Assembly (NCBI GenBank): GCA_001949185.1
Contig: BDGG01000006.1
Span: 1,532,827-1,596,826 of the forward strand
Source of the DNA: Ramazzottius varieornatus
Taxonomy: Eukaryota; Animalia; Tardigrada
DNA length: 64,000 bases
Direction: 5' to 3'
The stretch's first letter is position 1, and each line of letters begins with the position of its first letter. The notes under the pieces are model-generated. The model had not been told where the DNA came from. It saw nothing but the letters and a program-made list of their open reading frames with translations, and ran no database searches. Positions 28,494 to 48,705 of the stretch are shown in pieces. The translations under genes and the position numbers were made by a program.

Positions 28494-31400
28494 TTTGGGA
28501 ATTCCACTCGTTTAAGCCCAAGAACTCAAAAAGCCGATTTCCACATCAAGTATTAGTGAGATCAAAAGCTTCGGACTGAGCAAAGACGTGACCATACCAA
28601 GACTTCAAACACATGGAAACCTGGATAGAATGAGTACCAAGACTACATCGCGACTTCGTGATCAGTCTCCCACTTTGAGAAATCAGCGCTCGGACTCAGA
28701 CGAAGAAGCACAGACAGCAAAAATATCCATCACTAGTTTGCACAAAGTTGGAAATATCTCCCGACGTTCTTTCCACCACTGCAATGGCTTGTAATCAATT
28801 CCGTCGCCGTACCTGAATTGAAAAAGAGATCTTATTTAGCGCGCAGACTGTAAGGCAATTATTGTATCCTTGATGAACCAAGAATATTGCCTAGGTATTT
28901 GTCCACTTCGCTCTGGTCAACACTCGCATTCTTGTTCAGCAGTTTGAGGAACTCACTTCAGATGGTGCTGGTAGACACGGAAGTAAGTGCTGTCGACTTC
29001 GGAATTTAGTCACTTTCGTTTTGTAGAGCGCACAGAACTTTTTTAACAGATCCGATGTCGCAAGCTCGCCCGCCGTGTCTGGTACCAGGCTTGTCTTGAT
29101 GCAAGGATCTAAACGCAGCGCAACCTTAACCACGTCTTGCTGCCAGGAGTCAGGACTGATACGCGTCAGCTTGTCCTCCATGGCTTTTGCAGTCTTTCTC
29201 GGAATATCGGCCTGTGAATAAATCTAGGAAAAACTACAAACGTGGTTAAATACCGAACACAGAAAAAATTTACATAACTTAGAGCAACCAGATTTAAGAC
29301 ACCTACCGCCGTTGGAAGCTCTGAGCTTTGTCTCAGGTGAAGAGCCAGACGTGTCAGATAAAGCTTTCCGACATGGAATGTTGGCTCTGCTGCAGCAGAG
29401 CGGTCGACCGTAGTCTGCTGCATAGGCGTCAGGAACTCAACCAGTTCCCTTATTTCGTCCCATTCCTTCTCCAGTAGAAGAGTTTTCTTCATGTCGGTGC
29501 TGCCGTGCAGAGTGAAGTACTTCTTTAAATCGTGGCGCATCTCAAAGGCTCTTTCCACCACGTGTAACGTGCTGTTCCAACGGGTCGAACAGTTCAGCGG
29601 CGGGCCGAGCTTCTTCTTTTTGTCGTCAGTGAGCAGACTTCGGAAGATCCTTTTGGCTTCTGGTCTTTTCACGACTTTCATCAACTCGCGCACTCAACCG
29701 ATCAAGTTCTTCTCATCTACCACGCCAACCTGACACACTGTATTCACCACATGACAAATACATCGTAATTTGAATTCAGAAACTGTAAGCAGAAAAACGC
29801 AACGTCAACGTATGTTATCTCCTACAGAAATAAAACCAAGTAATTATAAAGGAAGAAATTTACCGTCGTTTTTCACACCGTGGCTTTCTCTCTCCATTCG
29901 CAGTTCAGGCAGGATGTCTTCGAAGAAGGCTGTCATGTTCGCTGCACCGTCCATTGTGTAGCCTAGAGTCTTACGAGCAATGTCGTAATCTCTCAAGACT
30001 GTCAGAACTGAGTTCTTCAGATTCTCGGCGCTCTGTTCGGCAGGCAGATCGACAAAGTCAAGCAGGACTCGGCGCAGCTCAACTCTTTGGTCACCCAGTG
30101 CGCTGCGATAGCCATGTATCCTTCTTGCGCTAGTGACGTCCATGGATCCATGGTGAGGGATATCCTTCCAGGTACTTCTGCCAGCTCCTTCTTTATCTAC
30201 AGATACAAAAAAATCGTGATCAGAGTTTTCTGAATGCAGCTACTGGTCCAGACCGTAACTGTACGAAAAATGTACCAGAATGCGGGAGTTGGGCAAACGA
30301 AACTTTAAAGATCGTTATCCTGAGTGACGTAACATTCCAGTCAATGGCAACCATAACGTACGCCACTTGTGAAAATAATTCTGTCAAGCTTCTTTCCACG
30401 TGGCGCGCTTTTCACATACTATCATCAAGGAGCCTGCGCCGCTTGGGAAAATGAACGTACCCTCTCCTTGTATTTTTCGAAGTCATCGAACAGCCAAGAC
30501 TTCAGAGTGTTTCTGGACCGTACAACATACGAAGGGTTCAGAGCCTTAACAAATTCGACAAATTCTTTGTAATCGACCATCGAGAATGGTAGAGAGCAGT
30601 TCCCGATTAGACGCTTCAGCTTGTCGTCTATTTCTCTCTGGGCTTTCTTGCTTATTGTCGGAATTCTGCAGCCTGCTTCCCCCTCCATCTTTTTACCACA
30701 CCAGTCTGGAACTCGTTCCTTCGCACTTTTGCCTACCTTCAGAATTTGGCTTAGCAAAGTAAGCTCGTCAGAAAAGTTGGACCTCTTTCCTCGTACTTAC
30801 AACAGTACTTCTTTCTTACGGCATCATGCGTCCGCTCAATGTCCTCGGCAGCTTTCCGCTTTTTCGAAGTCGTGGTGGGAGCTGTGGAGATCGAAGACGC
30901 AGCAGGTGATGGTGCTTGAACATCTTCTTCTACAACTCAGTCCTGTCTCGCTCCCGCTCGGCGTCTTCTTCTTCATGTCGACAAAGATCAGCTTCCAGAG
31001 ACTTCCGTCGCCCGAACACCTTCTCAATAGTCTTCCTACTACTACATAACGACGGGTTTCGAATTCCGCTAAAGACCGCCGAACAAACTTCCAAGACTCA
31101 CAATCGGGAAACTGTAGTATGAAAAATTCGCTACCGATATCCAGCAGAAATGAGATGATCGTTCACGCACGCTCGAGCACATAAATACATACGGCCGTAC
31201 GATTAGGCGAGTGCATTGAGATCGGTGCTGACGGCACATTCGGCACAGGACCGAATGGGCGGAGTATGTTCGGCACACCACGGCCAGAATCAAGGCTTTG
31301 AAATCAACCATAGTCTTTCGTGAACGTGTATCTTCGCCGAGTTTGTCATTCACCAAAATACCGATATATCGAAAATGTGTCGATATAGCGCGATACGATA

Positions 31401-31714
31401 TCGCCGAATATTTTATCGCGTTATTCGATACGAGTTTCACACCGATATTTTCGATACGATATTTGCTGCATATTATGCCGCAAAGATTCGTTATATTTCG
31501 ATACGATATCGGTATACCGGATCGTTGCCAGCAAAATTCCAGAAATATCGATATATCGCTGCGATATGGTGCGATATATCGAAAATACGGCATCGGAAAA
31601 ATATCGTATTGAAAAATCGATGTCGAATGAATATCGAAGACCGCAATAGAATATCCGCCGATATTGTATCGAAAAATATCGTATCGAATTTTATCGTTTT
31701 TTTGCTAGCGCTGG
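28494..31714 (-). mobile_element. Decayed hAT element, parent of the CGATA MITEs, with rearranged ends
   Basis: Transposase pieces on minus strand: BED region, LPFSMVD..F.EF...LNPSY, GYTMDGAANM, STRWNST, LDP, PLQWWK..FPTL..SESER; both flanks match the MITE interior. Confidence 0.85.
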
Positions 31715-32733
31715 TCACATGACTGTCCCATAGATTAGGCCTTGGGTGATAATGGCAAACTTCTCGCTCAGTGGACGAAATAACATGGGCCGTAAAAACC
31801 CCACCGTTACGGATTTCGGAACCCGTGGTAGCGAGACCGGATACCCGCCAGCGAAGCGCAAACGGAAAACACGGTGTAGGCTATTCGGATTCGGGTGAAC
31901 GGGTCGCTTTGCGATGCGGTAAAGCATCGCAAATCATCGAAAAATTCAATTTTTGAGCCATAAGTCTAGAGGTGATTTGCAACTTCTTGACGGCTGACGT
32001 TCGAATGCCCGAAAACTTCAATTTTTGTTAGGTTTCGGTAGGTGCATCTGCGCGGTAGTTTATGGCTTTCTGCTGTATGCTGTGCTGTGCCGCACAAATT
32101 TCTTCAGTTCTCGCGCTGTAGTGCAGCGCATGCGGCCAGATTCCGTGCTCTAGTTTGGACTCTGGCTATAATTATTTTTGGAGACTTTGGCCCAACCGAG
32201 AGACCTGACTGAATCATAATTTGCCGGCTTATAAGCGGAATCCATCTACTATGCAATACGCAACTGCTTATGATCAGAATAATGCTCTCAAGCAGAGTTA
32301 TGCTTGTCGACTCGAGAGCAACCGAAATCAGACCCGCTTGCGCTTAACACTCTGTGAACCGTGGGAACAGAACGGACCCAAAGTGGTGGTATTCTCGATT
32401 AATTGAAGGTTCCTTCAGCTTCTAATGGCGATTTCATACTACCATACATTACCCCGCTTTATGCAATTTGGCTTCTCCATGGGCATGTTGCTTTATGGCG
32501 GGGTCGTGTATGGTAGCATAAAAGCATCGCGACGTATTCCACTTTGACCGTCCAAAGTGGAGCTTACAGCGCTTGATGGGCCACCAGCTGTACGAGGAGC
32601 GAAACCCTACTTTTGCCACTGGTATACTTTACCTAGTCAAAGTCTGCAGATGGCAATGTTGGCTGCCTTGCTCCGCCAAGATCAGCTGATCACATTTACC
32701 ACCATAAGGCGACCGAGAAGGAGTGGGTAAAGT

Positions 32734-33402
32734 TAGTGATGTGTAATATGGGTTAATGAGATCTAACATAATAAAAATAAATATCCGCCGTCCATCAAAG
32801 TTCTAATAAGTGACCACTACTACAGTAAAACGTCTACCTGATTTAATAAAATATTACTATAGTAGATCTTCGGGGGTTTGATATCAAAATATAATTTAAT
32901 ATCGGAGAGCTCGACGGAAGATCCAAAGATTCAGAATCACAACCACCAGATCAGCAAAAATACTGTAGTACAGCTTGCACCCTGCACCTGCACACTGTAA
33001 CTTGGCCGGTTGAAGTGTCAGACTGTATGCAGGTGCACGGTGTTAAGGGTATTTATTTTGCAGTAGCCCTATTCTGCTGCTGTAGAGGCATCATTATGGT
33101 GTGGCGCACTTTATAAGGCGTGGTCGCACATCGAGAAACTAACGCACACGCATTAGGACTCAGCAAATCAACCAATTTTTCGAATCAGCGGTAGCGTTAC
33201 CCGTATTAAAATTTATTTTACTATGGACGATGGACAACTTAATAATAATAAAATATCGCACTTCTGGTCTTAAACTACTACAATATAAATATCGGAATGC
33301 AGTGCCCAATTCTGTCTACTAAATATTCGTTAATATAGTAGATGCTCAAACTATCTACTATCATCTACTTTAATATAATATTAATAAATTAGAACATCAC
33401 TA
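32734..33402 (+). mobile_element. hAT-type MITE (AT-rich)
   Basis: TIRs TAGTGATG / CATCACTA with perfect 8-bp TSD GGTAAAGT. Confidence 0.85.
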
Positions 33403-33918
33403 GGTAAAGTTTTAACTGTTCTGATCTAATGTAGAAATCAAGGCAGAAGCCAAAGTGCATCTGTCGCACAGACAATCTCTTTCTACTTCCCATGTCACAT
33501 ATGACACCGTTGGTCGCATTATGCGATCTTGCGACTGATCGTTTTCCCAAATGGCGCAAATTTTCAATGTTATCGGCTAGAAGCGTGCGCCACTGGAAAA
33601 TAGCGATCTACCAAGCTTGGTTTTTTTCCTCAGTGGCGCATGTTTACATTGTTACTGTCAGCAAAAGTGCGTCACGTGGAGAACGATCTTGTACGAGGTG
33701 ACAGTCGACCTTCGTGGCACACGATCTTACCGTAATTATCCGACAGCGTGCGCCATTTCGAAAAACGATCTTGCCAACTTTGTTTGCCGAGTTCCCATCG
33801 GGACAAAAAGAGAACGACTTTTACGCGAGCTTCCAGAATTTTGTTTCAAGAACATGTAAACGGATGGTACAGCTAAACAACAAAATTTTCACTACAGCGG
33901 AGTGGATCCCGTTGTTGC

Positions 33919-34688
33919 CTAGTTGTTCTTGGACTTCGACTTCACAGCAGAAACTTTATGTTTGAGTTTTGGCAGGGGAGTCGTCTTGGCTTTTGATTTT
34001 GAAGCAGACGCGGAAGGTACCTTTTTGGGAACTCTAGCGGTCTCAGCCCGTGCCTTGTCTCGTTTTGCTCTGGCCTTCGGAACGTGTCCTTCAGGAACAT
34101 CCGCCGTAGAATTGATGTTCGGCGGTGGTGCGGAGACGTCGTTTGCTATCTCCGCAGCCACTTGCTTAGCCGTCTTTCTCTGTCGCTTTGGTGTGGCTTT
34201 ACAAGGGTATCCTTGGTTAGTGGGGCTTTCATCTTCGCTGTCTGTCGCGCTTTCCACTACCAGCTCGATGCTTCGCTTTCGGCTTCTCAAGCCTTTGGCT
34301 TTCCCGCTGTTCTTTTCTATCGCGGCTTTCTTTGCACTGATGTAAGAGCTCTCTGTGAGGATTGATCCATTAGAAACATCGAGACGGGACTCTTTCTCTC
34401 GCCGTTTCTTCTGAGGAGCACTGCGCAGAAAGTTTTTGTGAAATTCCAAAGCTACCACGGAGCCTACCGATTCCCCTGTCATGATTCTCCTGATTTCCAA
34501 TAGGCAGCTAGTCGTCTCATTCTCGGTTAGGCCAATCTTTTCGCGAAGAATCTTTGTGATGTCTGCAAAATGCTCGTCACTTCCAACTTCCGTCTCTTCC
34601 ACGATTTCCAAGTGAGGATTCACTGTGCCTCTGAGCAGCTTGGTGTCAAACGGAAAACTGGAAGTACGTTCTTTCCAACGGCCCACCT
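33919..34688 (-). CDS. Exon encoding a basic K/A-rich tail; possibly the C-terminus of a pogo/CENP-B-type transposase relic
   Basis: Open ~256-codon frame after a TTTTCAG acceptor; KKRR..RLDVSNGSILTE resembles pogo-type C-termini; no DDE core found. Confidence 0.35.
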
Positions 34689-34803
34689 GAAAAGAAAAGC
34701 ATTCAGTAGGATAACATTCGCATAACAAGTATATTTGGAATCTGTACAAAAAACGCGACAAAAATGTTTATCCGAGTGGCGCACGCTTTCACCCAACAAC
34801 GGA

Positions 34804-34955
34804 GGTGGCTCGAGATATTAAAAAGGACCGCAGTTTGACCCTTTCTCTACGACGATGCTTGTCAGGTCCGTGCTCGGCACAACCTCGACTGATAATCCAT
34901 GAAACTTCGTAGAAAAATGGCAAAATTGCGGACCTTTTTAATACATCCAGCCGCC
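34804..34955. mobile_element. Small MITE
   Basis: GGTGGCTCGAGATATTAAAAAGGACCGCA / TGCGGACCTTTTTAATACATCCAGCCGCC inverted ends. Confidence 0.65.
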
Positions 34956-36530
34956 CCTGGCTAGCAATGCTGACAACGTGCGCCAGTTTATGATCTGGCG
35001 CATTTTTCCCCCTAGTTTTACTGCAGGATTTCTTGTCTGCTGACGCTTCATCGCAGATAGCCAGATATAGAAGAGTAACCTTGGCCAGTAAGCTCTTACC
35101 TAAGCTGAACGAGTACGGTGGACGATGTGAGTAGGGAAGTTGTGGCGAGAAACTTCCCTACTCACATCGTCCACCGTCCATCTACTTGATACGGCACATG
35201 TGTGGTTTACTGGATCAGCTGATCCTGGACTGCAGCGAGGCTTGCTGCGCCGTCTGAACTTCTCTAAAGAAAGCGTAATCCCGAATATCGAACGGAATTC
35301 CCGAACGACTTCCTCTCTGGGATTTCTCGCGTCATGATTTTCTACTTATTCCCACTTTTAACTGAGTAGGAATAAAGCTAAGTGTTTATAGGTACTTTTG
35401 AATTATTTTGGGTTCTTGGTAGCGGGACGTCAGCGAGAAAACGACCGTGGAAAAAGTTGTCACCAGTGCGCCAAATGGGTAAAGTTGGATCTCGCTCCTC
35501 GTACTTCAAGAATTCATCAATATCAACTTTGGTATATGTACGCGTACGTACAGCTTGATGAGTGGATTGATTGGTATTGTTCGCGCATGCAGCGCAACAG
35601 CTGATGTTATCAGCCATCGTGATGATGAGTGCTCACGATTACTCACTGTGACAACTGTAAGCTCGGAATTTCGTTCAAAAAATCAATGGCGTTTAACTAT
35701 AGTATACATCAACTCGGCATAAAGCGTACTGACGCATGATACCGCTCTTTAACTGATCTAATCAAGACTGATCATGTGTTAAGCCACGGCTCTTGGGGCT
35801 TGAGATGTTTTACTGGCACGGTGAGCAGTCTTGTTGACTCTGGTGATTTTGTGTCTTGAAGTCGCTCTTTCGACCAGCTCCGACCGAGGTTGGAGTCATT
35901 GCGGATGGCGGAGTACCCAGGCTGTCGATCGAGGCCGAGACACCGAAATCTAGAGAAGTAGTAATCATGATTCCGCCTGATACCGGCAGTCGCGATCTCA
36001 CTATTTCACTTAAAAAGTGTTCGAAGCAACCGAAAGCAACCGAAACTGACCGCAACTACACAGTTTTCCAAGCAAACACTTCACCAAGATGGATCATCGT
36101 GGTGTCACTAACACCTTAAAGACCAAATAAAAATAAGAACGATTGCTTTTCGGATCATCTTCCTCGGTCCAGTGAGCGTCGAAGCAACTCATCTCTTTTT
36201 CGATGCTTACATAGCTGACTGACACTGGATGTGCTTTCCAGTGTTTTCGAAACAAACATTGAGAACCTGCTTGAAGATGGAAGTGAGTAAGACAGGGGAT
36301 TGTGAAACGTTTATGTCAATTGCAGCCAGCATGATCTCGCGTATTCTGCTTATTGACTTGACACAATAGCGCTTCTTCCCGCTTCGCCGCGCATCAGCCC
36401 GGCTCTTCGAACCGAGAAGTTTTCTGATGGTTAGAAAGTTCCGCATTACTTTTCGTGGGTCAAGTTTCATTATAGCCAGCAGTTGTCGTTAGTTCATCGT
36501 TTGAGCTCAGCCGAACGCAGTACATCCGAA

Positions 36531-39500
36531 ATGGATACTGGGTCGGTTCCCCAGCCGAAAGAGGCGACCTTGATGAGACCGCCATACGATCCGAACGCAA
36601 CGATCTCGTAAGCTTACATGAATCTGGACCCAACTTTTCTCCAACGTGTTCACTTTCCCTCTGGGGTTGCAGGCTTCCGGCACCATGTTACCTGATTGGG
36701 CAGATGGAATTAGTCTATATTTATTTTGGCGCGGGTTTCTGGATACCCATCCTCGCATTAATCTACGTCCAGTTCGCGCGCATCAAGCGGTTTCTAGGGA
36801 AGAAGCTCCTTCAGAATCGGCTAACCCGTCAACACGTGGAAGGCGCTGTTGAAGAGGAGCTCGAACCCAAGAAGAAACTGGCGGCAACAGGGGAGGATCG
36901 CTTCAAACAGCTAATAGCGGCAAAGGCTAAGCAATCCCGGTTTACATTGGCTATGATTGAGGCGGCTTCCCCACAAAGCCTTCTCGGACAGGCTATGGTG
37001 CGTACTGTGGTCAAGATTATCAAGATTATTTCGTTTATCACAGCCGATTACTGGAAGAAAAATGGCGTGTTTAGATGGGTGTGGCTGTACTGTGCAGTGG
37101 CATATCTTTAGCCATTTATTTGTCGGCGGTCACATTGTAAGTTTTATACTGTTCCGAGATCTTCATAATCCTGAATGTGGACCATTTTCTACACCCCCAC
37201 TTTTTCCAGCCCGTCGCAAAGCGTGGAATACTGTGGAACCATGCCGAACGCGCATCAGCCGATCGATCTCCTGGCCAACATTTACCTGCTGGTCTATTTT
37301 GTGATACGCGTAAGTCTCCTGACGATAAACATGCCAGAACAAACGGGTACAGTCCAGACTCAAGACAGTATAGAAAGCAAGATTAATATTGTCTTTCAGG
37401 TTCTTGGGAACGAGAAAAAACTGGACATCGTCCTGCATTCTATGCATTCCATTGTGGATTACTTCACGATACCGGGTGTCATATTGAGCATTGTGCTTGA
37501 TCGCTATTTCATCGGTCTGCGTACTTTTCCTCATGTACTCCACCGTTCATGTTGCGCCCATATTTTTGTACATTATTTGATATCGATAGGTTTTGCGTTC
37601 TTCCGCGCATACAATTGTTTATGGATCGTTGATCTGTTGGCTAACCGCGGCATACTGCGTAACGTGAATACAATCCAATTGGCGCATTTGGTTCTGCTGG
37701 TGATTTCGGTCCTAATGATTTCCTCTGGGTTTTTGCACCTGGTGGAAAATATGGGCGATCCCTGGCTGCTGGCGACATCTGGACCGTACAATGGGCAGCT
37801 CATTTCTTTCTGGAGATGTTTCTTGTACCTGTATGGTCGTGTCACCCTTCTGGACCTGAGCGGCATGCGAATTCAGACTATGGTACGTCGGCTGTCTCTT
37901 CCTTACATCCATAGATTCACCGGACTTTTGTGTACAGCTTGGAAGGATCATTATCTACGGATTCCAGATCCTGGCGTTGGTAAGGCTTCCAGTCTTTCAT
38001 TCAATGATGGTAGATTTCGGAGATGTTCGGGGTGCTTATCCGTAGGGCATCGTCAGCAAAGCCATACCACAGATTATTCTCCGGATGAAAGTTGTACCCC
38101 AGTTTTTCGACAAGACATACCAAGTGCCGGTATTGTCCTTGTGAGTTAGTATTTCCTGTCGCAGCAGAAGTGTTTTGGGTGAAGTCGGTTGTCCGTCTTC
38201 TGGCAGGCATCTGGTTGTTTGCGGACACGTGCGAGTGGGTCCCATGACATCATTCCTGAAAGAGTTTTACAACGAGGACCGCGAGCTCAGCGAGTATTTC
38301 CAGATCGTCATACTGGACGAGTCAGAACCTGACGACGCCATGAGTCGCTTGCTGGAACTGTATTACAACCGACTCGACTACCGCAGGGGTTCCGTCATGA
38401 AGAGCAAGGACCTTCACCGAGTCAAAGTAATGGAAGCCGAAGCTGTGCTCATCCTCGCCGACCGAACGACTAGCGACATCGACGCCGAAGATGCCGCAAA
38501 CATCATGCGCGTAGTATCCATTAAGAACTACAGAGAGAATGCTCGTGTCATTGTACAAGTTCTACAATACCAAAACAAGGCGAGAAAGTCTTCTCGCAAT
38601 CTTCGAAAGCCTGGTGTGAAAATATCGGACCGAATGATTTCAGTGCGAAGATACATCACATTTTACAGGCGTACTTGCAAAACATACCCAGCTGGTGTCC
38701 GAAGCATGGTGATGTCTGTCTGTGCATCGCGGAACTGCGTTTGGGTCTTGAAGCGAGAAGTTGTCTGGTACCCGGCTTTTCTACCCTAATGGCCAATTAT
38801 TTTACAACGCGCTCGTTCAGCGAAGACAGAAAGGTAAGCTACCGTACTAATGTCATCGCATATGCCGTTCCATAGGCGGCACCGAGCGCTTTTTCAAGTA
38901 ATCGTCTGTTTACTCTAGTATACCGGTACTTGGATGGATGAATATCTGCACGGCACTTCGCTGGAGCTGTATTCAAGGACTTTTGGCCAAGCTTTCCACG
39001 GACTGACTTTCGCTCAAGCGTGCGAGTAAGATGAAGTAGTAGAGAGGCTGCAATTTACGTAGAGAAACCAAACAAACGAAAACTAATCAATTTTGAAAAT
39101 CACAGTTTGTAAAAGGAATCGCTGAAACCTTTGAGAGGTTGCAAGAGACGCGGCAGTTGGAGGAAAAAGCTAAAATAAACGACTGAGGCTAGCCATAGTA
39201 ATTAGCTTGATAGAAAGTGCTGACCAAAGTGCATTTTGAATGTCTGATTGTCTGGAGTGGAGGTCCTGCGCTAGCCGGGGACGAATTACGCTTCCCGGTG
39301 CTTATTGCCAGCCAGAGAAAAACTGAGGGCAGTTCGGGAAAATTCTAAATCGGCGGAACGCTCCTTCGGGGTTCACGAGAAACGCCCCCTCCCCCCCCAC
39401 TCGTTTCTGCAATCGCGAAGCGAATTGCTCAACTTGAATTTCGAAACATCCCTAAATCTAATCGTTTTGTCCAAACTATCGTTTGTTCAAACCATCTGCA

Positions 39501-41824
39501 CAAAGTGTAACTTCTCTAGTGTACTGCTTTACTGACTGCAGCATCATCAGCACATGCTCGTTCTGTTTAAGGTTTTGTTACCGGCGGTTGAAAGTCCTTC
39601 TGATAGCTCTCCACATCAACCCAGATGACCCTTTGACGTCCCCACAAATAAATCCACCACCTTCAGTCAAAATAACGGGGTCGACCTATGGATATTTTGT
39701 TGCTGATTCAACGGTCGAAGTTGACCGGTATGTTTAGTGCCGTGTGGCCAGGAGCAATCGCCCATTGGTTCTGCGAATAAATCCAAAAGATGACGTGGTA
39801 TTTACCTTATATTTTTTCAGTGTCTTCCACTACTGTGCGACCTGCCACAGTGATTTCTCGGATCTGGCGAACATCAAGCAGTGCAAATGTCGACGTGAGT
39901 GTCTTTCAGATTTTACAGCAACTCTCGGCATACCACCTGACCTGCGCTACGGTACTTTAGACGCTGAGGGCAGCACACTCATTTATGAATCGAAGACTTC
40001 GGTGTCCACCCCTCGTTCACCACTTCTTCGCATGCTCTCGCAACGGAAAGGAACAGAGATGGAGTCGAAGTTGTGGACTTACATGTGCCACTATCCTAAT
40101 GCGTAGGCCGCTCACCACCTGTTTTAAAATAGACCTTATGTCGCTTGAAAGCGGCGACGACAATTGTATAGTATATACCCAAGTGGATTTACTTGTCCTT
40201 CAGCGACGCAAAGCGAACAAATCAGTCGAAAGACAATCCATCGACAGACCAGTACGACTCAACCGGCAACTTTCATTGGTGCACGCCGATTCCCTTTAGC
40301 ACCTGCGTTCTGGTAAAGTGCTGCCAGGAGCGGGCTATAACAGCGTACCAGATCACCGTCAAGTAGAGGTTCACTAAGCCAAAGTTTTCTAGGATCGCCA
40401 CCAAGCAGCTCTGACGTCCTTCCGCGATCACATCGTCCTGTGCATATTGTCCCAACCGTATTCTCAGAATATTGGGATCGCTAGCTTTGTTCTACCCCTA
40501 CGCACCAGTAGCTTCCGTAGGGAAGACTTGAGAGACATAGTCGTCCTGGGCGATCCCGAATTATTGGAACGCGAATGGCCGTATCTTTGTAACCTACCCG
40601 GGATCTACGTCGTCCAGGTACCTCGAGAATGAAATGTAATTTCTTTGATGTCAAAGTGCACGCCACCTGGTGGGAAATGATTCATTGCTGATTGAATGTG
40701 TTTTTTATCAGGGCTCCGCATTGAACAGGTCGGATCTGCGGGCTGTTCACCTCAACACCTGCCAAATGTGCGTCATGCTGGGCGCACCTGGCTCAAGCGA
40801 CCCGAACGCCGCTTCCGGTAGTGCTGCCATCGACAAGTCCGTCATCTTGGCCACCTTGAATGCCCGAGCTATGCGCTTCTCGGACGAAGAAAATAAAATG
40901 CACCTCCATTCCAGAAGTGAGAAAGCCGGTACTCTGAACACAAACTAATTGCAAGGCGCGAACAGCGGACAACTTTTCTGTGGTCAAGAACTGATTGCTT
41001 GTAGGTAAATACAAAGGTGTATACGAGGATCATAAAATCACGAAAGTTCGCGAAAATGGATACGAAGTACCTTTGCTGACGGATCTGAGTAAGTCAAATC
41101 TTTCAGACATATAGACACTGTACTGACTCTAAGCATGGTCATTTGTTTCCATCTTCGCCAAATTTTAGCAAGGGAATCCAATGTCCAGTTTTTGGAGTCG
41201 GATGACATGGGGGAGGACCTGCCCGGCACAGAGTTCTACTTGACACAGCCCTACGCTGGTGGCAGGGCATTTGCCACCAGTGTGCTGGACATGCTGATGA
41301 TCACGTCTTTCTTCACCCCTTCCATTGTCAAGATCTTCCACAGCTTGGTCTTCGGTGGCGCATCACTTGAGCTCGAACGACTTCTTGCGGAGGGTGCCGG
41401 TTTGATCGGCGGACCCGGCATCTCGAAGACGACAAAGGCTGATAACCAAGTGGTAGTAAGGCAGATACCAGTCGACAGCCCTCCCTTCCGTGTCTACGCG
41501 GTAAGTTGCCACAACCGGTCCGAGCTTTAGTGAGTCTGAAACCACAGTACATTCGATCAATCTTAGGGATTGCCGTACGGTGGCCTTTTCCTGGATGCGC
41601 TGGTTAACACGAATCTACTCATTCTGGGACTTTACCGATGCATAGAGGATGGCGAAGGTGGACTACTCTGCGATAAACGTTACGTAGTTTCCAGCCCGCC
41701 AGAAAGCTTCGTTGTTCGGGCCAGCGACCTGGTTTTCGTGCTGCAGAGAGCCGACTGGCAATCTCCTGAATCGACGACCCAACAGCGATCAGTGTCAAGA
41801 CTCGCGGACGTGAATATACTTTAG
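36531..41824 (+). CDS. Divergent Slo1/BK-family channel subunit lacking the K+ selectivity filter; roughly 18-20 exons
   Basis: Exons splice in frame to give S0-S6 ([22 protein letters not shown]), RCK1 ([28 protein letters not shown]), [18 protein letters not shown]2 ([32 protein letters not shown]); the RCK1-RCK2 linker and one RCK2 loop exon were not fully resolved. Confidence 0.92.
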
Positions 41825-42639
41825 TACAACCCCTGTTGCTTGACTGCTTTCTGAGTTTTAGACAGCGCTCAACATGATATACATTTGTTTTTCAGGTTGA
41901 TTCCGTAAGGATGAGAGATGCCGCGGCAAAGGTTTCGCGCGATCCAAGCTTCAGAAGCAGCGTTAGATTATGGATGATGTAAAGGATTCACGGTGTTACA
42001 ATACCACATGTATGTCTTCTTACAGTGTTCGATTATACAGACAAGATCTAAACTTTTCAGATATTGTTGTCTTTTTACGCAGCCAACATTCCATCAGAAC
42101 GCCGCAAGCGAAAATTTACCGAGTACTTTACTCGTTTATGTCTCGATTCACTGCTTTCATGATTCTCGATCATATTAGTTTTGGCATGCAAAACACTGCC
42201 AGCTGACAGTCACGTTTTGTGGAAGTCACACTTTGAATTTCCGTACAGCTGGCATGGGTTTCCGCACCTGTGCCTGCAGTTTATGCGCGATTCTTTCACA
42301 CTGACTCGATCGAACAGCGCGCTCAAGAGGCACGGTCAAGTTTCGCCCCCCCCCCTACAACACCGCCCAATCAGTGCCTTCCCACGCGACCCGAAAATTT
42401 GCTGACCCTCCGAGCCTTCGAGTTCCACCACTGTAATGGATCATTACGTTGTGGAGAAACACTTGTTGAATTTTGCGAAGGCAAAAGAGATCGGACAAAG
42501 AGTTCGAGACTTTCATCGGGGAAAACGTTAGAGGGAAGGAGAGGAACAAGAAACCATTTGCTGGTCAAGATGACTGCGAAATCTCGATTCGATTCGCATG
42601 GATTTTATTCCCATTCCCACTGGTTCTCACTTCTTACTG

Positions 42640-43094
42640 ACGCATCGCCATAACTGCTGCGCAGTTTCAGCTTGATCCATGGCGGCGAACCATCCAAGCT
42701 GGTCGAAAAAGCACACGGCACAGTCTTGAATGAGGAAGGTTGTCCGCTTCACCAAATCTCTTTATCGGGGAAGGAACCCACCAGAAACGCTACAAAACCA
42801 GAACTCGATGCCTAAGAACCCAGCTTTGACTCCATCGGCCCAGGTACGTGCAAGCAATAAATATCACGTTTCGACGGTTCGTTCTGCGGAAAGCGGAGCC
42901 TGATTACATTCATGTCTACTCTAGAACCGCGAGTACATGTAGTAGAATGCGTAGTCTGCATGTCAAAGATGCCGAAGACAGTATTCGCTCCTTGTAATCA
43001 TCTGCACACATGTTATGTGTGCCGAGAAGCTACTGTATTCAAGAGCGATAACAGACATTGCCTGACCTGCCGTGGAGAGACTGAGCGTTGCTGA
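42640..43094 (+). pseudogene. Degenerate KH/RING gene, paralogue 2
   Basis: KH-like SLIHGGEPSKLVEKAHGTVL..ISLSG, then an intron and RING CVVC..APCNHLHTCYVC..CLTC. Confidence 0.55.
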
Positions 43095-43264
43095 CGCGTC
43101 TGGAATTGAGATAGACAGTCATCTTTGAAACGACTGAGACACCATAAAAAAGGCTCGCGGTAAAACCAATCTTTAACTGACGCGCTTTTGTTCTGTCGGT
43201 TCTCTGGTTTGGTTCTTCTGACAGCTAGGTTCACAAAGTCCGGCGTTATACCGCCTTCAGAAAG

Positions 43265-44927
43265 CTACCCTTTACGGCGCTGTAAAATCGTCTGAACTTC
43301 CTGCACCGAGCGACCTTTGGTCTCAGGCAATCGAAAGTATAAAAATGTCGAAGATACCACCAGAAAGCCGATAAAGATTAAGAAGATGTATTCTTCGGCA
43401 ACAGCCACCACCACCGGAAAGGCAAACGTTGTCACGAGTGAGCCCGTCCACGCTGACACACCTGTCCATGTCATGGCGGAAGCGCTTGCCTCAGGTCCGA
43501 ACAGCTCCGTAGGCAGGTTCCATGGCACAGAGAACGGTCCGATTCCATAGCACGCCATGAACAGGAAAACGCATGCCACACTAGCGTACTGTGTCCAGAC
43601 GTGGCCTTGTTTCGTCAGCGCCATACACATCACGAGCAAAGTCAAAGCCAATGTTTCCACTGCGTTAGCTCCCAGGAGCAATGTTTTCCTACCGGCTTTC
43701 TCCATCAGTACGGAACCTAGTAAAGAAAAAACGAGCAGCACTGCGAAAAGTCCGATAGTAGCGTAAACAGCGTCGAGTTGAGTCAGGCCGACACGGTTGA
43801 AGATTGATGTAGAGTAAAAAGCAATGCTCAAGTATCCGGAAAATTGCTGGGAAATCATGGCGACAGCGCAAAGGATGAAGGTTGACCGGCGGAAGGAAGA
43901 CTTCCAAAAGCCGAGTAGGGAGACTTGGTTCTGTACTGCGTGGTCCAGATCATACTGAATGCTTGCTAATTCTTTCTCAACGTCTTCGGTTCCTCGTAGC
44001 CAAATTAGAGCCCTTCGAGCTCCCTCAGGATCTTTGGAGTCCTTGAGTAAGAGACGTGGACTGGCAGGGCAGAATGGTAGAGCCACAGAAAAAATCAAGA
44101 CGGGTACTAGTGGAATCACAATGAGTATCGGCCAGCTGTCCTGCGATCCGAGAATCATTGGTAGGCTGAAGGTGGTCCCAAATATCATACCGGCGACGTA
44201 CATACTGTAACAACACGACAGTCCAAAACAACTATCCTGAAAGGCAGTTCTCACATTGTCGTGACTCTGTACTGGCTTACATCATAGGAATGCTCCCCAC
44301 TGTACCACGCAATGTCGGAGGCGTGAGCAGCGAGATGTACAATGGTGCTACCACGCAGATGAAGCCCATCGAAGCTCCCGCAATCAGCCGGCCAGCAATT
44401 AGCAGCTCAAAGGAAGAAGCCCATTTGGACGTTGCGAACATGACCGTCCCCGCAGTGAAGACTACATTGGTGAACAGCAGCGAGCCCTTCGTGCCTAGCT
44501 TATTAATGACCAATGTGCAACCGAAGGTAGCCACCAATCCTCCAACAGTAATGACTGACGAAGCAATCGCCCAGATGGTGTTCAGCTCTGCATTTTCTCG
44601 GAGGATATTGGCTTCGTCCTGCGGAAGGTAGTGTCGACACCACAGGTCCGTACTCTCGGAGTCGTTGTAGCTTATTCCGGTGGACCCACCTAGTCTTTCG
44701 CATTTGACCGATCGAATCCAGTTGACGATGATAGACTGAAGCCCGTTCAGAGCCACCAGCAGGTATCCCATGACAAACCATGTACCGAAAGAAACAATGA
44801 ACGCAACAGACAGCAGAGAAAATGTCAACTTATCAGCTGGCTTCTGGCTCGTCGTCATCCTCATGCCGAACCCGTCGGTGAGCGGGAGAATCTCGCTTTT
44901 CCTGATGCAGTGATGTTTTGATGACAT
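43265..44927 (-). CDS. SLC2/GLUT-family MFS sugar-porter homologue; 2 exons (intron 44205-44280)
   Basis: ELLIAGRLIAG, PLYIS..PPTLRG, PASPRLL, QQFSG, EKAGRKTL, PW..TELF, LPETKGRS; start at 44927 or 44864. Confidence 0.92.
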
Positions 44928-46049
44928 TGGAAGGGCTTCGCCGAGAAGCTAATGTTCCAGGCATCGTCTGGAAAGACTGTCCTATTTTTAATCGACGGTC
45001 AGTCGTAAAATATGTTAAAATTTCCAATTGCATGCCGAGCAAAGGTTCATGCTGCCAAGCATTCTCAGAGTCTTATCTGAACACGTCGTAAAATGATTTC
45101 TAGATAGAAAAATCAACACGTGCGAATTATCGTGGGATATTCAAAAGCGTCTCAATCTGGTTTTATCATGCTGAGAGTATCTGAATTTCCTTCGAAGGAA
45201 ACCACAATATTTTGCAAAACGAGAAATGATTGTTCTCGGATACCTGCTGAGAACGCCAGCCGGCTTTGACGCTGCTTTCGCAACTGACGACTTTCCAACC
45301 TGAAAACGGTTCGGTATCGACTTGCAGTCGACACAGTGGGAAAACTTCAAGCGGCGCACGTTTTTACTACTGTCGCCTGAAAGCGTGCGTCACCTGCAAA
45401 AAACAAAAGCAACTGGATTTTTTTTCGAAGTGACCCATGATTTCGGTGTTATTGGCTGAGAACTTAAGCCACTTGTAAAAGCAGCTTGTCGAGTTTGTTT
45501 TCCCATTGTGCCGGCACGTTTACGGCTGCCTTTGATGTTCCGGACGATTTACAAATGTAATGAGCGAGTTGCTGCGGAGGTTTCAGTCCCTTCAAAGCCG
45601 CGTCGACAGCCTTTCCTTCGCCATAATGAGCTTTCATCCAGCTGAGAAAAATGATACCTCGTTGATCGATATCTGCGGATATTGTTTGCTGCTGTGGAAG
45701 GAACGAAACATACCTTGCGGATGAGATTTTCAGATCTAGATTTTGGTCAGTACTTGACACAGTGTTGCATATGAAAGGTCTTCCACGTCGAGTTTGTTTA
45801 CTGGACTGCACTTGCTCGCCAGCAAGTGCTGTCCAGTGAATTTCGAAAGTGCCCAGCGGTACAAGAAATTCGAATGCTGAAGGACAAACACGGCACGAGG
45901 TAACGAGTATTCCGTTTCAGAAAACCACCGCCGAATTACCCATCTCATATTTCAATGATTTTGACCTCTAACAAAGGGATCAATGTAATGCTGATCCACA
46001 AAATAGGATCGCTGGTGGATAGAACAGAGTTTCTTTCATCCCCAGAGTC

Positions 46050-46218
46050 AATAGCCTAGACCCATTTCAGTTCCGGGAATACACTACAGGACGCAGAAGT
46101 GACGAAAATTTAGCCGCATTATGATTGATTGGATGACTGATTGCGCTGATTGTGTCATTATTTCGTCACTTCCGTGTCCTGTAACTTACTGCCGGAACGG
46201 CAATGCGTCTAGGTTATT
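46050..46218. repeat. Palindromic MITE
   Basis: AATAGCCTAGAC..TACAGGACGCAGAAGTGACGAAA versus TTTCGTCACTTCCGTGTCCTGTA..GTCTAGGTTATT. Confidence 0.7.
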
Positions 46219-48705
46219 AGCCCAGCGCTTACTTACGTGACAACGCTATCCCTGGGCTAGGCGCGTAGAACCAGAGCGCGTCGGTTCGATTCACCGTTCA
46301 TCCTTTTTGCTTTATCCTCCACGAAAATGTGTTAATCCAGTGAAAATCATAACTATTTTTGAGGTCTTTGCTTTCGTTTCTGTTTAAAATCTGACTTTGA
46401 ACATTCGGAAGAATTTCTTCGAGAAAGAAAGCACTTCCTATAATAGGATTCATGGACCTAGCTGCACAGAATTCGTCGCAAATTTCGAACAAGCAACATC
46501 GGAGAAATAATAATTGGCATGAATGGCATCTAGAGCCCAAGAAATCACGACTAAAAGGAAGGAAATTCAACACTGGTGGCGTCTAAAATCATCGCTGGAA
46601 GGATTTCTCCGAAATGCAGCCTAGCACGTGTCGGCCAAAGAAAGTCACCGAATTACTCCGCTCTTGCAACCGATGTAGCTGCCTCGAGCTTTCGTGAATA
46701 TCCTTCAGCGTTTCCTGTGAAAGAAGCAAATCCGAAAATTCAAAAATAGTACAGGCTTCTGTAAATGCCAGCAGTTTCCTACTTTTGATGTGATGGTGCT
46801 GTGGGGTAACAGCTTCAAAGTAACGAAGAGTTTTGCTGAGGCAGCAGCAATATCAGTCTTGAGGGAATGGAGGATGTCTCGCCGTATGTCGTTATTCTCA
46901 TGTCGAAGTGCACGGCGATGGGCAGATGGTATCCTCACAGGTTCCGTTTCTCCAATGGGAATATAGTCCGAATTAGAGAACGTACTGGAGGCGAAGGCAG
47001 ATGTCGAGGTAGTCGAAACCGAGAGATGATCCGAGTGGCGATCGTAGTCGTCTCCATCGTCGTTCACTTCGGCTGGCACGATAACAACCTTCTCGGCTGG
47101 AATGTAGTTCTCGTTCTCCATGCTCGTCCTTCTATCCCAAGGCTACAATTTCCGTCTTGAATGCCAACCAGCAATACAAGAAATCACGGCGCGGAGGTAA
47201 AAACCAGAAGCTTCAGAAATTTAGAGCGAAAAATCAATCTCGATATTGGCGTTCTCAAATCTCAAACAAGCCGAAACCAGTCTGCCAATCAGTCATAAGT
47301 TTTCTGCTGGTGCCCGCTCCGATCGACCGACGGAACCACCTGTTGCAGTTTTCGCTCCGCCCACTCACAGGGTTGAGTCAATCACCCCTCGTTCCACCTG
47401 GTTTAACCGGGCGAGTTCAAAAACTTTTGTTTTGGAAAGTGGAACTGCCATTTCTAAGACTTGAGTCGTTATAGCGCTGACGTTTTTGCCGACAACCGTG
47501 CAAACTTCTCATTTCTGCCTCCTGACCGCCAGGAAATCTGGGAGGATCAAGAAGATCGTGAGAAGTTCTAATGCCATGAACCGAAAATACTGGAACGGAA
47601 CCCTGGCCGGAGAGTACCTGTGCATCCGACCCTTCTTCACCTGCTACGCGTCAGGTTCGCAGACCAAGTTGCAGGAGCTAGAAGTGGGAGAGCTTTACCA
47701 GAACCTCAATTTGGACCTGAAATCGCGAAACTTCGTTCAAAATCGGGTTGGTCACCTCCTGGAATCGAGATGGTTTGCTGCTCTACAAAGCATTGTAACT
47801 GACAGCGAAGCTGGTCCTGTAACCCTTGAAGGTGGACAGATTGTTACTCACGAGGATCGCTTTGAACGTTGTCTCTACGGCCCTCTCAGGACAGGAGAAC
47901 TGAGGGAATATTCGTTTATCACAACGAAAAAAGAGCGATTCGAAAGATTTCTCAGCTTGTGGGCGGATTACGTTCGATCGCTGAATATCGGTAAGTGTAC
48001 TCTACCGCGGCGTTTCTTATCCTCTAATAGAATATCGCACGAACGTCAGACCAACTTATGGTATCTTACAGGGGATCTTGTGCACGTGTGGTATGACGAT
48101 ACGAACGTCAGCGGACGCTTCCGATGCAAGAGCCTGTTCTTCGACGTGCCATTCCCTCAGGGAATCACGAAGCCCGACATGTGGATAGGCATCGAGTTGT
48201 CTGGAAAATTCATCGGCAAAGGAAATTCGGACGGTACTTTCAACGGCGTTCGCTACTTTACTTGCGCTGAAAACGGTGCTTTGTTTGTTTCGTACGAAGC
48301 GATAGCCTGGAACTGCGTGAAATGCACTTGCGGTAACTCGGCAAAGCATCATCAATGCTCGATAGTCATCGAAGCGGTCAAAACAATCGACAACATGGTT
48401 CGAACGCTGCAACAAGACAAGTTCTTTCTGATGCCCAACCGCAAGTTGACCGTCGAAGTAAGTCATTCTGTCTGTAGAAAGAAAAGTCAAGTTTTGCCTA
48501 TTTCTAAGGTTTGACACAATCGATTGCAGAAACTGGAAGACGACTTGGACCAAGAGTTACCCTATGAACATACTGCACTCGTGATTTGTGTTTCGGTGGC
48601 TTAAAGTCTGATTGATGAATACGGGCAGGAGAAGCATCTGCAGAACGTAGAGGTGTCGCGAGATCTTCCAGGTGTTCGACTGCTGCGAGTAGACATGAGG
48701 GTGGT

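Follow-up and report, generated by a model that had tools for sequence, protein, structure and literature searches.

What becomes of a BK channel when the selectivity filter that defines it as a potassium channel is replaced? This question is raised by RvY_11543, a gene of the tardigrade Ramazzottius varieornatus lying within a window of 64,000 nucleotides (C6:1532827-1596826, contig BDGG01000006.1 of assembly GCA_001949185.1), for which an earlier note, made from the letters of the DNA, had proposed an apparently intact Slo-family gene with no K+ filter. BK/Slo channels are among the best-studied of all ion channels, and to our knowledge every characterised member of the family is a K+ channel. 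We find that RvY_11543 is intact, transcribed, and selectively maintained. Going beyond the earlier note, alignments and genome searches indicate that it is one of a whole conserved tardigrade subfamily with an invariant motif of its own, in which the net charge of the pore region is reversed. RvY_11543 is almost certainly an intact, expressed, and maintained member of this tardigrade-specific subfamily, here called LDLS after its pore motif, which derives from Slo1 and had its K+ filter rewritten on its stem, and the protein probably carries something other than a K+-selective current.

Pore, gating ring, and expression of RvY_11543

Alignment with MAFFT of the 1112-codon model of RvY_11543 and the canonical Slo1 proteins of a wasp, a gar, a leech, and three tardigrades places residues W301-R327 of the model on the pore helix, filter, and S6 start of Slo1 without a gap, as the earlier note had claimed, with residues T287, V288, G289, Y290, G291, and D292 of Slo1 replaced by L313, L314, D315, L316, S317, and G318 of RvY_11543. 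The backbone of a K+ filter needs both glycines of the GYG motif; as there is no glycine at either of these positions in RvY_11543, where Asp, Leu, and Ser stand instead, the canonical four-site K+ filter cannot form. The pore helix, in which a single arginine had been noted, contains two, with R302 at the position of E276 and R310 at that of T284. In S6, the VPEIIE of Slo1 reads IPQIIL (38067-38081), again in agreement with the earlier note, with E321 changed to Q347, E324 changed to L350, and P320 kept as P346. In Slo1, the large conductance is owed to acidic residues at both mouths of the pore, E321 and E324 on the inner side and D292, the position of G318 in RvY_11543, on the outer side. 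The loss of the RKK linker, also proposed previously, is borne out insofar as VPQ occupies the place of the vertebrate RKK, however it carries little weight, because canonical invertebrate Slo1 proteins also lack a strict RKK (RPK in tardigrades, RCK in the wasp). A new C-linker motif, P..YDK.Y, follows S6.

The pore segment of RvY_11543 has a net charge of +6, with R320 found at the position of Y294 of Slo1, and K343 at that of S317, a deep-pore residue reported in a review to be reachable by 2-(trimethylammonium)ethyl methanethiosulfonate (MTSET; PMC5677106). The S4 arginines R207, R210, and R213 correspond to A229, R232, and N235, such that only R210 is kept, and the asparagine at R213 is invariant in the clade. 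Features kept in comparison with Slo1 include D153, R167, D186, and R210, the S5 motif HL.EN.GD, the Trp and Cys of the pore helix, and the S6 proline (P320), together with the length of the C-linker, N449, and both RCK halves.

Searches with single exons or public proteins as queries are consistent with this division. Both RCK halves are found by Pfam, as expected from the conservation stated in the earlier note, with Slo-like_RCK matching in two stretches in the full-length relatives P0002 and P0064 and in one (RCK1) in the shortened public model P0059; BK_channel_a and Slowpoke_C are also found in the product or its orthologues. The RCK1 exon (38178-38579) matches the structure of Drosophila Slo with an E-value of 2e-31, and the HMMER alignment of the membrane exon to human Slo1 covers residues 204-281, ending just before the filter. 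Neither Ion_trans (PF00520) nor Ion_trans_2 (PF07885) is found at E <= 0.01 in P0059, P0002, or P0064, whereas both are present in the canonical Slo1 of R. varieornatus (P0065) and in P0035, a member of a second altered clade discussed below. Precomputed domains give the same result, with neither Ion_trans nor Ion_trans_2 in six full-length LDLS proteins, and both in canonical tardigrade Slo1. The calcium bowl of Slo1 binds through the side chains of D895 and D897, plus N449. Aspartate is found at both the D895- and D897-aligned positions in five of the six other full-length proteins of the clade, the exception being P0002.

An AlphaFold2 model of the partial protein P0059, calculated from an alignment of 20 rows with a mean predicted local distance difference test (pLDDT) score of 70.8, comprises S5 (residues 109-138), a turret, a pore helix (157-169), an extended loop containing L-L-D-L-S-G (170-180), and S6 (181-209). 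Block pLDDT values are 76-86 over the pore helix, loop, and S6 start, and the pore helix ends exactly at the conserved threonine (T312). The best 40 matches obtained with this model in Foldseek are all Slo1 structures; together with the order of segments, these matches predict that the re-entrant P-loop architecture persists. A tetramer predicted from four chains of the P0059 pore domain (residues 100-215) scored 0.00, which speaks neither for nor against such an assembly.

Around 40% of the sampled words of the stretch are contained in public R. varieornatus runs, and spliced transcript contigs from four runs in four studies, mapped to positions 36300-42200, cover RvY_11543. These contigs skip introns at GT..AG borders and thus derive from mature mRNA, with a single contig of run X1 spanning S2, the pore exon, and into RCK1. 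Runs X1, X3, and X5, of 2022-23, show 33 differences from the reference over 36300-42200 (~0.6%), whereas run X13, of 2016, is identical to it, indicating that data labelled R. varieornatus come from at least two strains or lineages. The LLDLSG codons are without difference in X1, X3, and X5, runs that otherwise differ from the reference. Twenty of the 33 differences are coding, 12 being synonymous and eight non-synonymous, which corresponds to a ratio of non-synonymous to synonymous polymorphism (pN/pS) of 0.20, far from the dN/dS near 1 that the earlier note had named as contrary evidence; compared with a neutral expectation of 76% non-synonymous changes, eight of 20 gives a one-sided binomial p = 5e-4.

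The reading frame is likewise undisturbed, with all 1112 codons open, every exon joint in frame, and no stop or frame break in any of the 21 exons, including the linker exons that the earlier note had left unresolved. A GYG-type pore exon was sought in six frames of positions 30000-48000 of the window, and no channel exon was found, extending the earlier observation on the introns that flank the pore exon, which measure 75 and 55 bases. The sole match to [ST].G[YF]G in these 18 kb, T-D-G-F-G on the minus strand at 44879, falls in an unrelated frame, amid unrelated sequence, and does not belong to a channel. A pseudogene reading of RvY_11543 is contradicted by the open frame, the spliced contigs, the pN/pS of 0.20 (p = 5e-4), and synonymous codon changes under invariant residues.

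The LDLS family in tardigrades

Searches of the R. varieornatus genome (55.8 Mb, 200 contigs) with the RCK1 and pore exons reveal four more loci with an altered pore (Table 1), giving at least five filter-less Slo-like genes, with each of the four other loci colinear with 968-1067 of the 1112 model residues. Six full-length LDLS proteins are found elsewhere by a word-indexed search with P0002 of Paramacrobiotus metropolitanus, namely P0002, P0061, P0062, and P0063 of P. metropolitanus, and P0060 and P0064 of Hypsibius exemplaris, all of which are named calcium-activated potassium channels by their sources. The pore motif of the clade, Y-G-[RK]-[VIL]-T-L-[LI]-D-L-S-G-[MIL]-[RK], is nearly constant, with T312, L313, D315, L316, S317, and G318 being clade-invariant apart from departures in two paralogues on contig C1. 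In these two, the otherwise invariant glycine after LDLS is replaced (LDLSR and LDLSY); the LDLSY paralogue also has Met for Leu before the Asp, and its branch is the longest in the clade. The 10 kb surrounding this MLDLSY paralogue (C1:5523800-5533799) include 427 consecutive N, such that its intactness is readable only in part. The recurrence of the motif in four other loci and in six full-length proteins of two other tardigrades indicates that the pattern is not due to chance.

Among the five R. varieornatus genes, 11 of 20 pore-motif residues are invariant, and nine of these 11 use more than one codon, which points to purifying selection on the protein; gene conversion as the cause of the shared motif is rejected on the same ground. 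Relative to Slo1, the clade has become fixed for small or polar residues at R207, Asn at R213, Arg/Lys at E276, T284, and Y294, Lys/Arg at S317 (Slo1 numbering), and Gln at E321, together with replacement of the whole filter and loss of the Mg2+ ligands D99 and E374; variable residues stand at E324. Mean identity within the clade is 0.70 for the pore loop and S4, 0.59 for RCK1, and 0.54 for RCK2, whereas identity to canonical Slo1 is only 0.16 for the pore loop and 0.34 for S4, placing these among the least Slo1-like segments. That the segments most conserved within the clade are the least similar to Slo1 is the signature of a new function that has been fixed, rather than of decay. The maintained Slo paralogue proposed in the earlier note is thus upheld by transcripts, a pN/pS of ~0.2, an open frame, the lack of a GYG exon, and conserved paralogues.

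An exhaustive HMMER scan of the pore exon against 1.84 billion representative proteins yields 58 matches, in which the LDLS motif is found in no named non-tardigrade protein, occurring only in tardigrade proteins and in Logan/ENA fragments without an organism name (P0003-P0006, P0012, P0025, P0030, and P0041). Other pore-spanning matches among the 58 carry GYG or GFG, except for two tardigrade proteins with the motif T-[IL]-G-S-[PA]-D, and a few short or fragmentary matches contain no pore motif. No published description of the LDLS family was found in the literature on tardigrade K+, BK, or Slo channels, or on Slo-family or invertebrate channels without GYG, and the family appears to be previously undescribed.

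Phylogenies were calculated as quick IQ-TREE trees with support from the Shimodaira-Hasegawa-like approximate likelihood ratio test (SH-aLRT) only, after trimming of P0063 and P0060. Both of these proteins look like fusions with a neighbouring gene, with P0063 (1872 amino acids) containing ~880 extra N-terminal residues and a precomputed match to PF02104, which we take to be the SURF1 family, and P0060 (1432 amino acids) containing a C-terminal extension of ~200 residues with extra hydrophobic helices. The LDLS proteins come out as monophyletic (SH-aLRT 100), with their long stem measuring 1.31 changes per column, and are sister (SH-aLRT 91) to the T-[IL]-G-S-[PA]-D clade, both lying inside a tardigrade-only expansion (82). 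Canonical tardigrade Slo1 proteins (P0065-P0067) group instead with insect slowpoke (SH-aLRT 99). RvY_11543 is therefore not an orthologue of slo-1, with the LDLS clade falling within a separate tardigrade expansion. A canonical slo-1 and further filter-less paralogues, which the earlier note had suggested be sought, are both present in R. varieornatus and related genomes; the canonical slo-1 of R. varieornatus is RvY_11161 (P0065), near 425 kb on C6, the same contig as RvY_11543, and several further Slo-like loci bearing TVGYGD are found in this genome. In a wider tree that includes approximate products of the other R. varieornatus loci, assembled from tblastn segments, Hypsibioidea and Macrobiotoidea are both represented in each of at least three subclades, indicating that the pore change is old and has been kept through several duplications. 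RvY_11543 itself pairs with P0063 of P. metropolitanus (58-59% identity).

The sister clade carries filters of the form TMATIGSPD in P. metropolitanus (P0035, XP_055333001.1) and TMATLGSAD in H. exemplaris (P0056, OQV20958.1), with a copy in R. varieornatus, also TMATLGSAD, on the minus strand of C2 near 279 kb (C2:277485-280443). Like the LDLS clade, it contains only tardigrades among its named matches, and has lost the tyrosine of GYG and R213. Unlike the LDLS clade, it has retained the first glycine of the filter, together with D292, an acidic end to S6, and the Pfam ion-channel matches, and has a net pore charge of -2. RvY_11543 is not a Slo3 (KCNU1) either, with turtle Slo3 and a gar relative forming a clade of their own apart from the tardigrade clade, and with a GFG filter that differs from that of the LDLS proteins.

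Gene structure and coordinates

The gene model comprises 21 exons, from 36531 to beyond 42200 (Table 1), with transcript contig depth starting near 36497. Nineteen of the 20 introns are placed from spliced contigs, 15 of them as tabulated joints and the rest from the ends of contig pieces and a loose end, and the remaining intron (36998-37074) is inferred from its GT..AG borders, the restored frame, and a gap-free alignment to orthologues. The last intron (41824-41895) interrupts the stop codon, which reads TAG whether this intron is spliced out or kept. The intron that follows exon 9 (38580-38668) is of the GC-AG type, the donor being read as GC after a 2-base shift of the joint, and is supported by contigs of three runs.

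The public models of RvY_11543 are partial, at ~500 amino acids each (P0001, GAV00740.1, RvY_11543-3; P0059, GAV00739.1, RvY_11543-2). Exon 12 (39572-39727) is missing from both, and both end at exon 14, where read-through into intron 40103-40203 leads to an immediate stop that matches the end of these models. This intron, and intron 40313-40392, are retained in contigs of runs X1 and X5.

Table 1. Exons and pore features of RvY_11543, in positions of the window, and altered-pore paralogues of R. varieornatus, in positions of the contig named. X1, X3, X5, and X13 are sequencing runs.
Feature	Position	Strand	Basis
Exon 1: start codon, N-terminal tail to conserved LPAPCY motif	36531..36607	+	ATG at 36531; donor GTAAGC at 36608; frame joins exon 2; clade members align
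Exon 2: S0 helix, S0-S1 linker	36673..36997	+	Contig pieces in X1, X5; donor GTGCGT after 36997
Exon 3: S1 helix	37075..37136	+	Acceptor TTTAG; frame restored; X13 loose end joining 37136 to 37210; gap-free orthologue alignment
Exon 4: S1-S2 loop and S2; D174 and R188 kept	37210..37309	+	Contig pieces, 4 runs; joint 37309>37400 GT..AG
Exon 5: S3 and S4 start; D208 kept	37400..37514	+	Contig pieces 37400-37513, 4 runs; GT..AG after 1-base shift
Exon 6: rest of S4, S5, turret, pore helix, new pore loop	37590..37882	+	Contig pieces 37589-37881 in X1, X3
LLDLSG (L313-G318) replacing TVGYGD	37847..37864	+	Codons CTT CTG GAC CTG AGC GGC
Exon 7: S6 start; LGR, Y331, F333, Q334 conserved	37938..37979	+	Joints 37882>37938 and 37979>38046 GT..AG
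Exon 8: rest of S6, C-linker; K343 at 38058-38060	38046..38140	+	Spliced contigs; alignment
Exon 9: RCK1 N-lobe	38207..38579	+	E 2e-31 to Drosophila Slo (7pxe); joint in 3 runs
Exons 10-11: RCK1, BK_channel_a region	38669-38833, 38919-39025	+	Joints; Pfam PF03493 match on public partial protein P0059
Exons 12-14: RCK1 end, RCK1-RCK2 linker	39572-39727, 39821-39894, 39961-40102	+	Joint 39025>39572 in 3 runs; further joints
Exons 15-18: RCK2	40204-40312, 40393-40617, 40712-40916, 41005-41088	+	GT..AG joints, 3-4 runs; alignment
Exon 19: calcium-bowl region, RCK2	41169..41500	+	Contig pieces, 4 runs
Calcium-bowl segment Q923-Y940: acidic cluster, 2-residue insertion unique to RvY_11543	41186..41239	+	Alignment
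Exon 20: RCK2 C-terminal lobe, ending with TA of stop codon	41567..41823	+	Contig pieces 41566/41595-41823; Pfam Slowpoke_C in orthologues
Exon 21: G of stop codon, 3' untranslated region running past 42200	41896..42200	+	Contigs in 4 runs stop at or before 41823 and resume at 41896; GT..AG intron read from sequence
Paralogue KVTLIDLSG	C2 near 544 kb		
Paralogue RITLLDLSR	C1 near 3.698 Mb (C1:3698620-3698769)		
Paralogue RVTLLDLSG	C6 near 88 kb		
Paralogue RVSMLDLSY	C1 near 5.530 Mb (C1:5530778-5530927)		

Candidate function and relation to known channels

We propose that the LDLS protein would still assemble as a Slo-like tetramer, in which S5, the pore helix, the extended loop, and S6 follow one another in the usual sequence, and that, as in BK, S6 would be pulled open when a ligand (probably Ca2+) binds the gating ring. 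With R210 the sole one of the three S4 arginines to remain, voltage sensing is expected to be weakened. The opened pore would be short and not K+-selective, with its narrow part formed by T312-L313-L314-D315 and lined by a ring of four aspartates, and our leading guess for the resulting conductance is one that is Ca2+-regulated, weakly voltage-dependent, and either cation non-selective or divalent-permeable. The precedents of CASTOR and TRPV6, compared below, favour such a gating-ring-controlled, non-K+-selective pore with a four-Asp ring. The mechanism as a whole, in which a Ca2+-regulated pore controlled by the gating ring is not K+-selective, is plausible, with a probability that we would place slightly short of even. 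The more specific suggestion that the LDLS clade forms a new RCK-ring-gated class, the Ca2+-regulated T-L-L-D pore of which may pass Ca2+ or other non-K+ ions and so depolarise or signal instead of hyperpolarising, is tentative and, in our view, rather doubtful.

Several features weigh against a cation-conducting pore of this kind. Two acidic residues of the inner mouth, E321 and E324, are no longer present, and the net charge over the stretch that begins with the pore helix and ends with S6 is +5/+6 per subunit, compared with -1 to -4 in canonical Slo1. Two conserved basic residues, R320 at the outer mouth (Y294 of Slo1) and K343 deep in the pore (S317 of Slo1), should be unfavourable to cations and would suit a pore that is blocked or prefers anions. 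Additionally, neither Mg2+ ligand (D99 or E374) remains, RvY_11543 has two extra residues inserted in its calcium bowl, and the resemblance to TRPV6 and CASTOR is a motif-level analogy rather than homology of the filters, to be taken as a lead only. The strongly positive surroundings argue against an easy path for cations, and so keep two rival explanations alive, namely a non-conducting subunit and an anion-preferring pore.

In the former, the positively charged pore would be permanently closed, as suggested by the net charge of +5/+6, the Lys/Arg ring at deep-pore S317 (PMC5677106), and the Arg ring at the outer mouth. The role of the protein would then be that of a scaffold that senses Ca2+, or of a modulator or dominant negative that joins canonical Slo1 or further Slo-like subunits in shared assemblies, after the fashion of the electrically silent Kv subunits, with the canonical slo-1 and several GYG-bearing Slo-like genes of the same genome as possible partners, and the failure of the Pfam ion-channel models to match would be readily understood. 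A dead pore, however, gives no obvious reason for the polar loop residues T312, D315, S317, and G318, and for S6, to be the parts best conserved across at least four old paralogue lineages, five paralogues seem more than a simple modulator needs, and the silent Kv subunits keep GYG; we regard a non-conducting role as the main rival, though one that is less likely than the proposed pore. An inverted or unusual selectivity, by which the pore would pass anions or another permeant that is not a metal cation, is improbable to a greater degree. The charge shift of ~+8 per subunit relative to canonical Slo1 would here be adaptive, the charge of D315 being cancelled through a salt bridge with either R310 or R320, and both the conservation of R302, R310, R320, and K343 and the loss of E321, E324, and D292 would be in keeping with it. 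Against this, the invariant D315 sits in the loop itself, the pore-helix dipoles of the P-loop fold favour cations, and we know of no anion channel built on the P-loop fold of K+ channels.

That the pore is still K+-selective through an unconventional filter is highly unlikely. Whilst the rest of the protein is clearly Slo1-like, and T312 at the end of the pore helix occupies the usual place of the filter threonine, G289, Y290, and G291 are changed to D, L, and S, removing both filter glycines and the tyrosine, and in K+ channels even single changes to GYG abolish K+ selectivity. If the gene copy were in decay or had lost its function only recently, or if the choice of exons had produced an artefact by missing one with GYG, this would account for public models (RvY_11543-2 and -3) that end at ~500 amino acids and for the introns retained in some contigs. 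However, 1112 open codons, spliced mRNA in four studies, a pN/pS of 0.2, a motif common to orthologues in two other genera, and 18 kb with no GYG-like exon, including flanking introns of 75 and 55 bases, leave this explanation with a negligible probability.

Were the LDLS clade indeed a new RCK-ring-gated class whose pore passes Ca2+ or other non-K+ ions, the family would be a metazoan counterpart of CASTOR in plants, would have converged on the filter of TRPV6, and might tie to the Ca2+ signalling proposed for anhydrobiosis. As an old, multi-gene, and maintained lineage, the family provides a natural experiment in which the gating ring and voltage-sensor shell of Slo are kept, the filter is exchanged, and the pore charge is reversed, showing what else the Slo scaffold can do. 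Furthermore, the database name of calcium-activated potassium channel probably misstates the function of LDLS proteins, and inflates counts of tardigrade K+ channels. A comparative genome paper of 2017 reported the calcium-activated potassium channel family to be duplicated in both tardigrades studied, and linked it to signalling in anhydrobiosis (PMC5531438); if part of this duplicated family does not consist of K+ channels, that link needs re-examination.

Comparison with known systems places RvY_11543 on the scaffold of Slo1/BK (KCNMA1, Drosophila slowpoke, and C. elegans SLO-1; structures 5tj6, 6v22, and 7pxe), with which it shares the S0-S6 layout, S5, the pore-helix Trp, the S6 Pro, the length of the C-linker, tandem RCK1-RCK2 (47% and 42% identical, respectively), BK_channel_a, Slowpoke_C, and an acidic calcium-bowl segment. 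Missing from RvY_11543 are TVGYGD, the Ion_trans and Ion_trans_2 matches, R207, R213, E321, E324, D292, D99, and E374, and its pore is net positive. The plant nuclear channels CASTOR, POLLUX, and DMI1 similarly combine a K+-channel-type pore and an RCK gating ring with no TVGYG and a conserved Asp in the predicted filter, and CASTOR has been described as a Ca2+-regulated Ca2+ channel in which the filter Asp is needed (PMC6697748). In contrast to the LDLS proteins, these are plant proteins with four transmembrane segments and the filter motif A-D-S/A-G-N-H-A, and the RCK1 of RvY_11543 matches DMI1 only at E 6e-4, such that the likeness is best read as one of functional analogy and not of family membership.

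In TRPV6, the filter T538-I539-I540-D541 forms an Asp ring that is the main Ca2+ site (PMC5890290). TRPV5 and TRPV6 are, like the predicted LDLS assembly, tetrameric P-loop channels, and the T-L-[LI]-D that directly follows the pore helix in the clade resembles the T-I-I-D of TRPV6; however, the families are unrelated beyond the pore fold, the residues to either side of the motif are not alike, and arginines surround the loop of the tardigrade proteins. A precedent for a lineage-expanded K+ channel family evolving non-canonical filters is provided by UNC-58 and other atypical K2P channels, with a filter change rendering UNC-58 of C. elegans Na+-permeable and depolarising (PMC11513965). Whereas UNC-58 differs by single-residue changes in a TxGYG-type filter, in the LDLS family the whole filter and the charge of the pore have been replaced, and this on a Slo scaffold.

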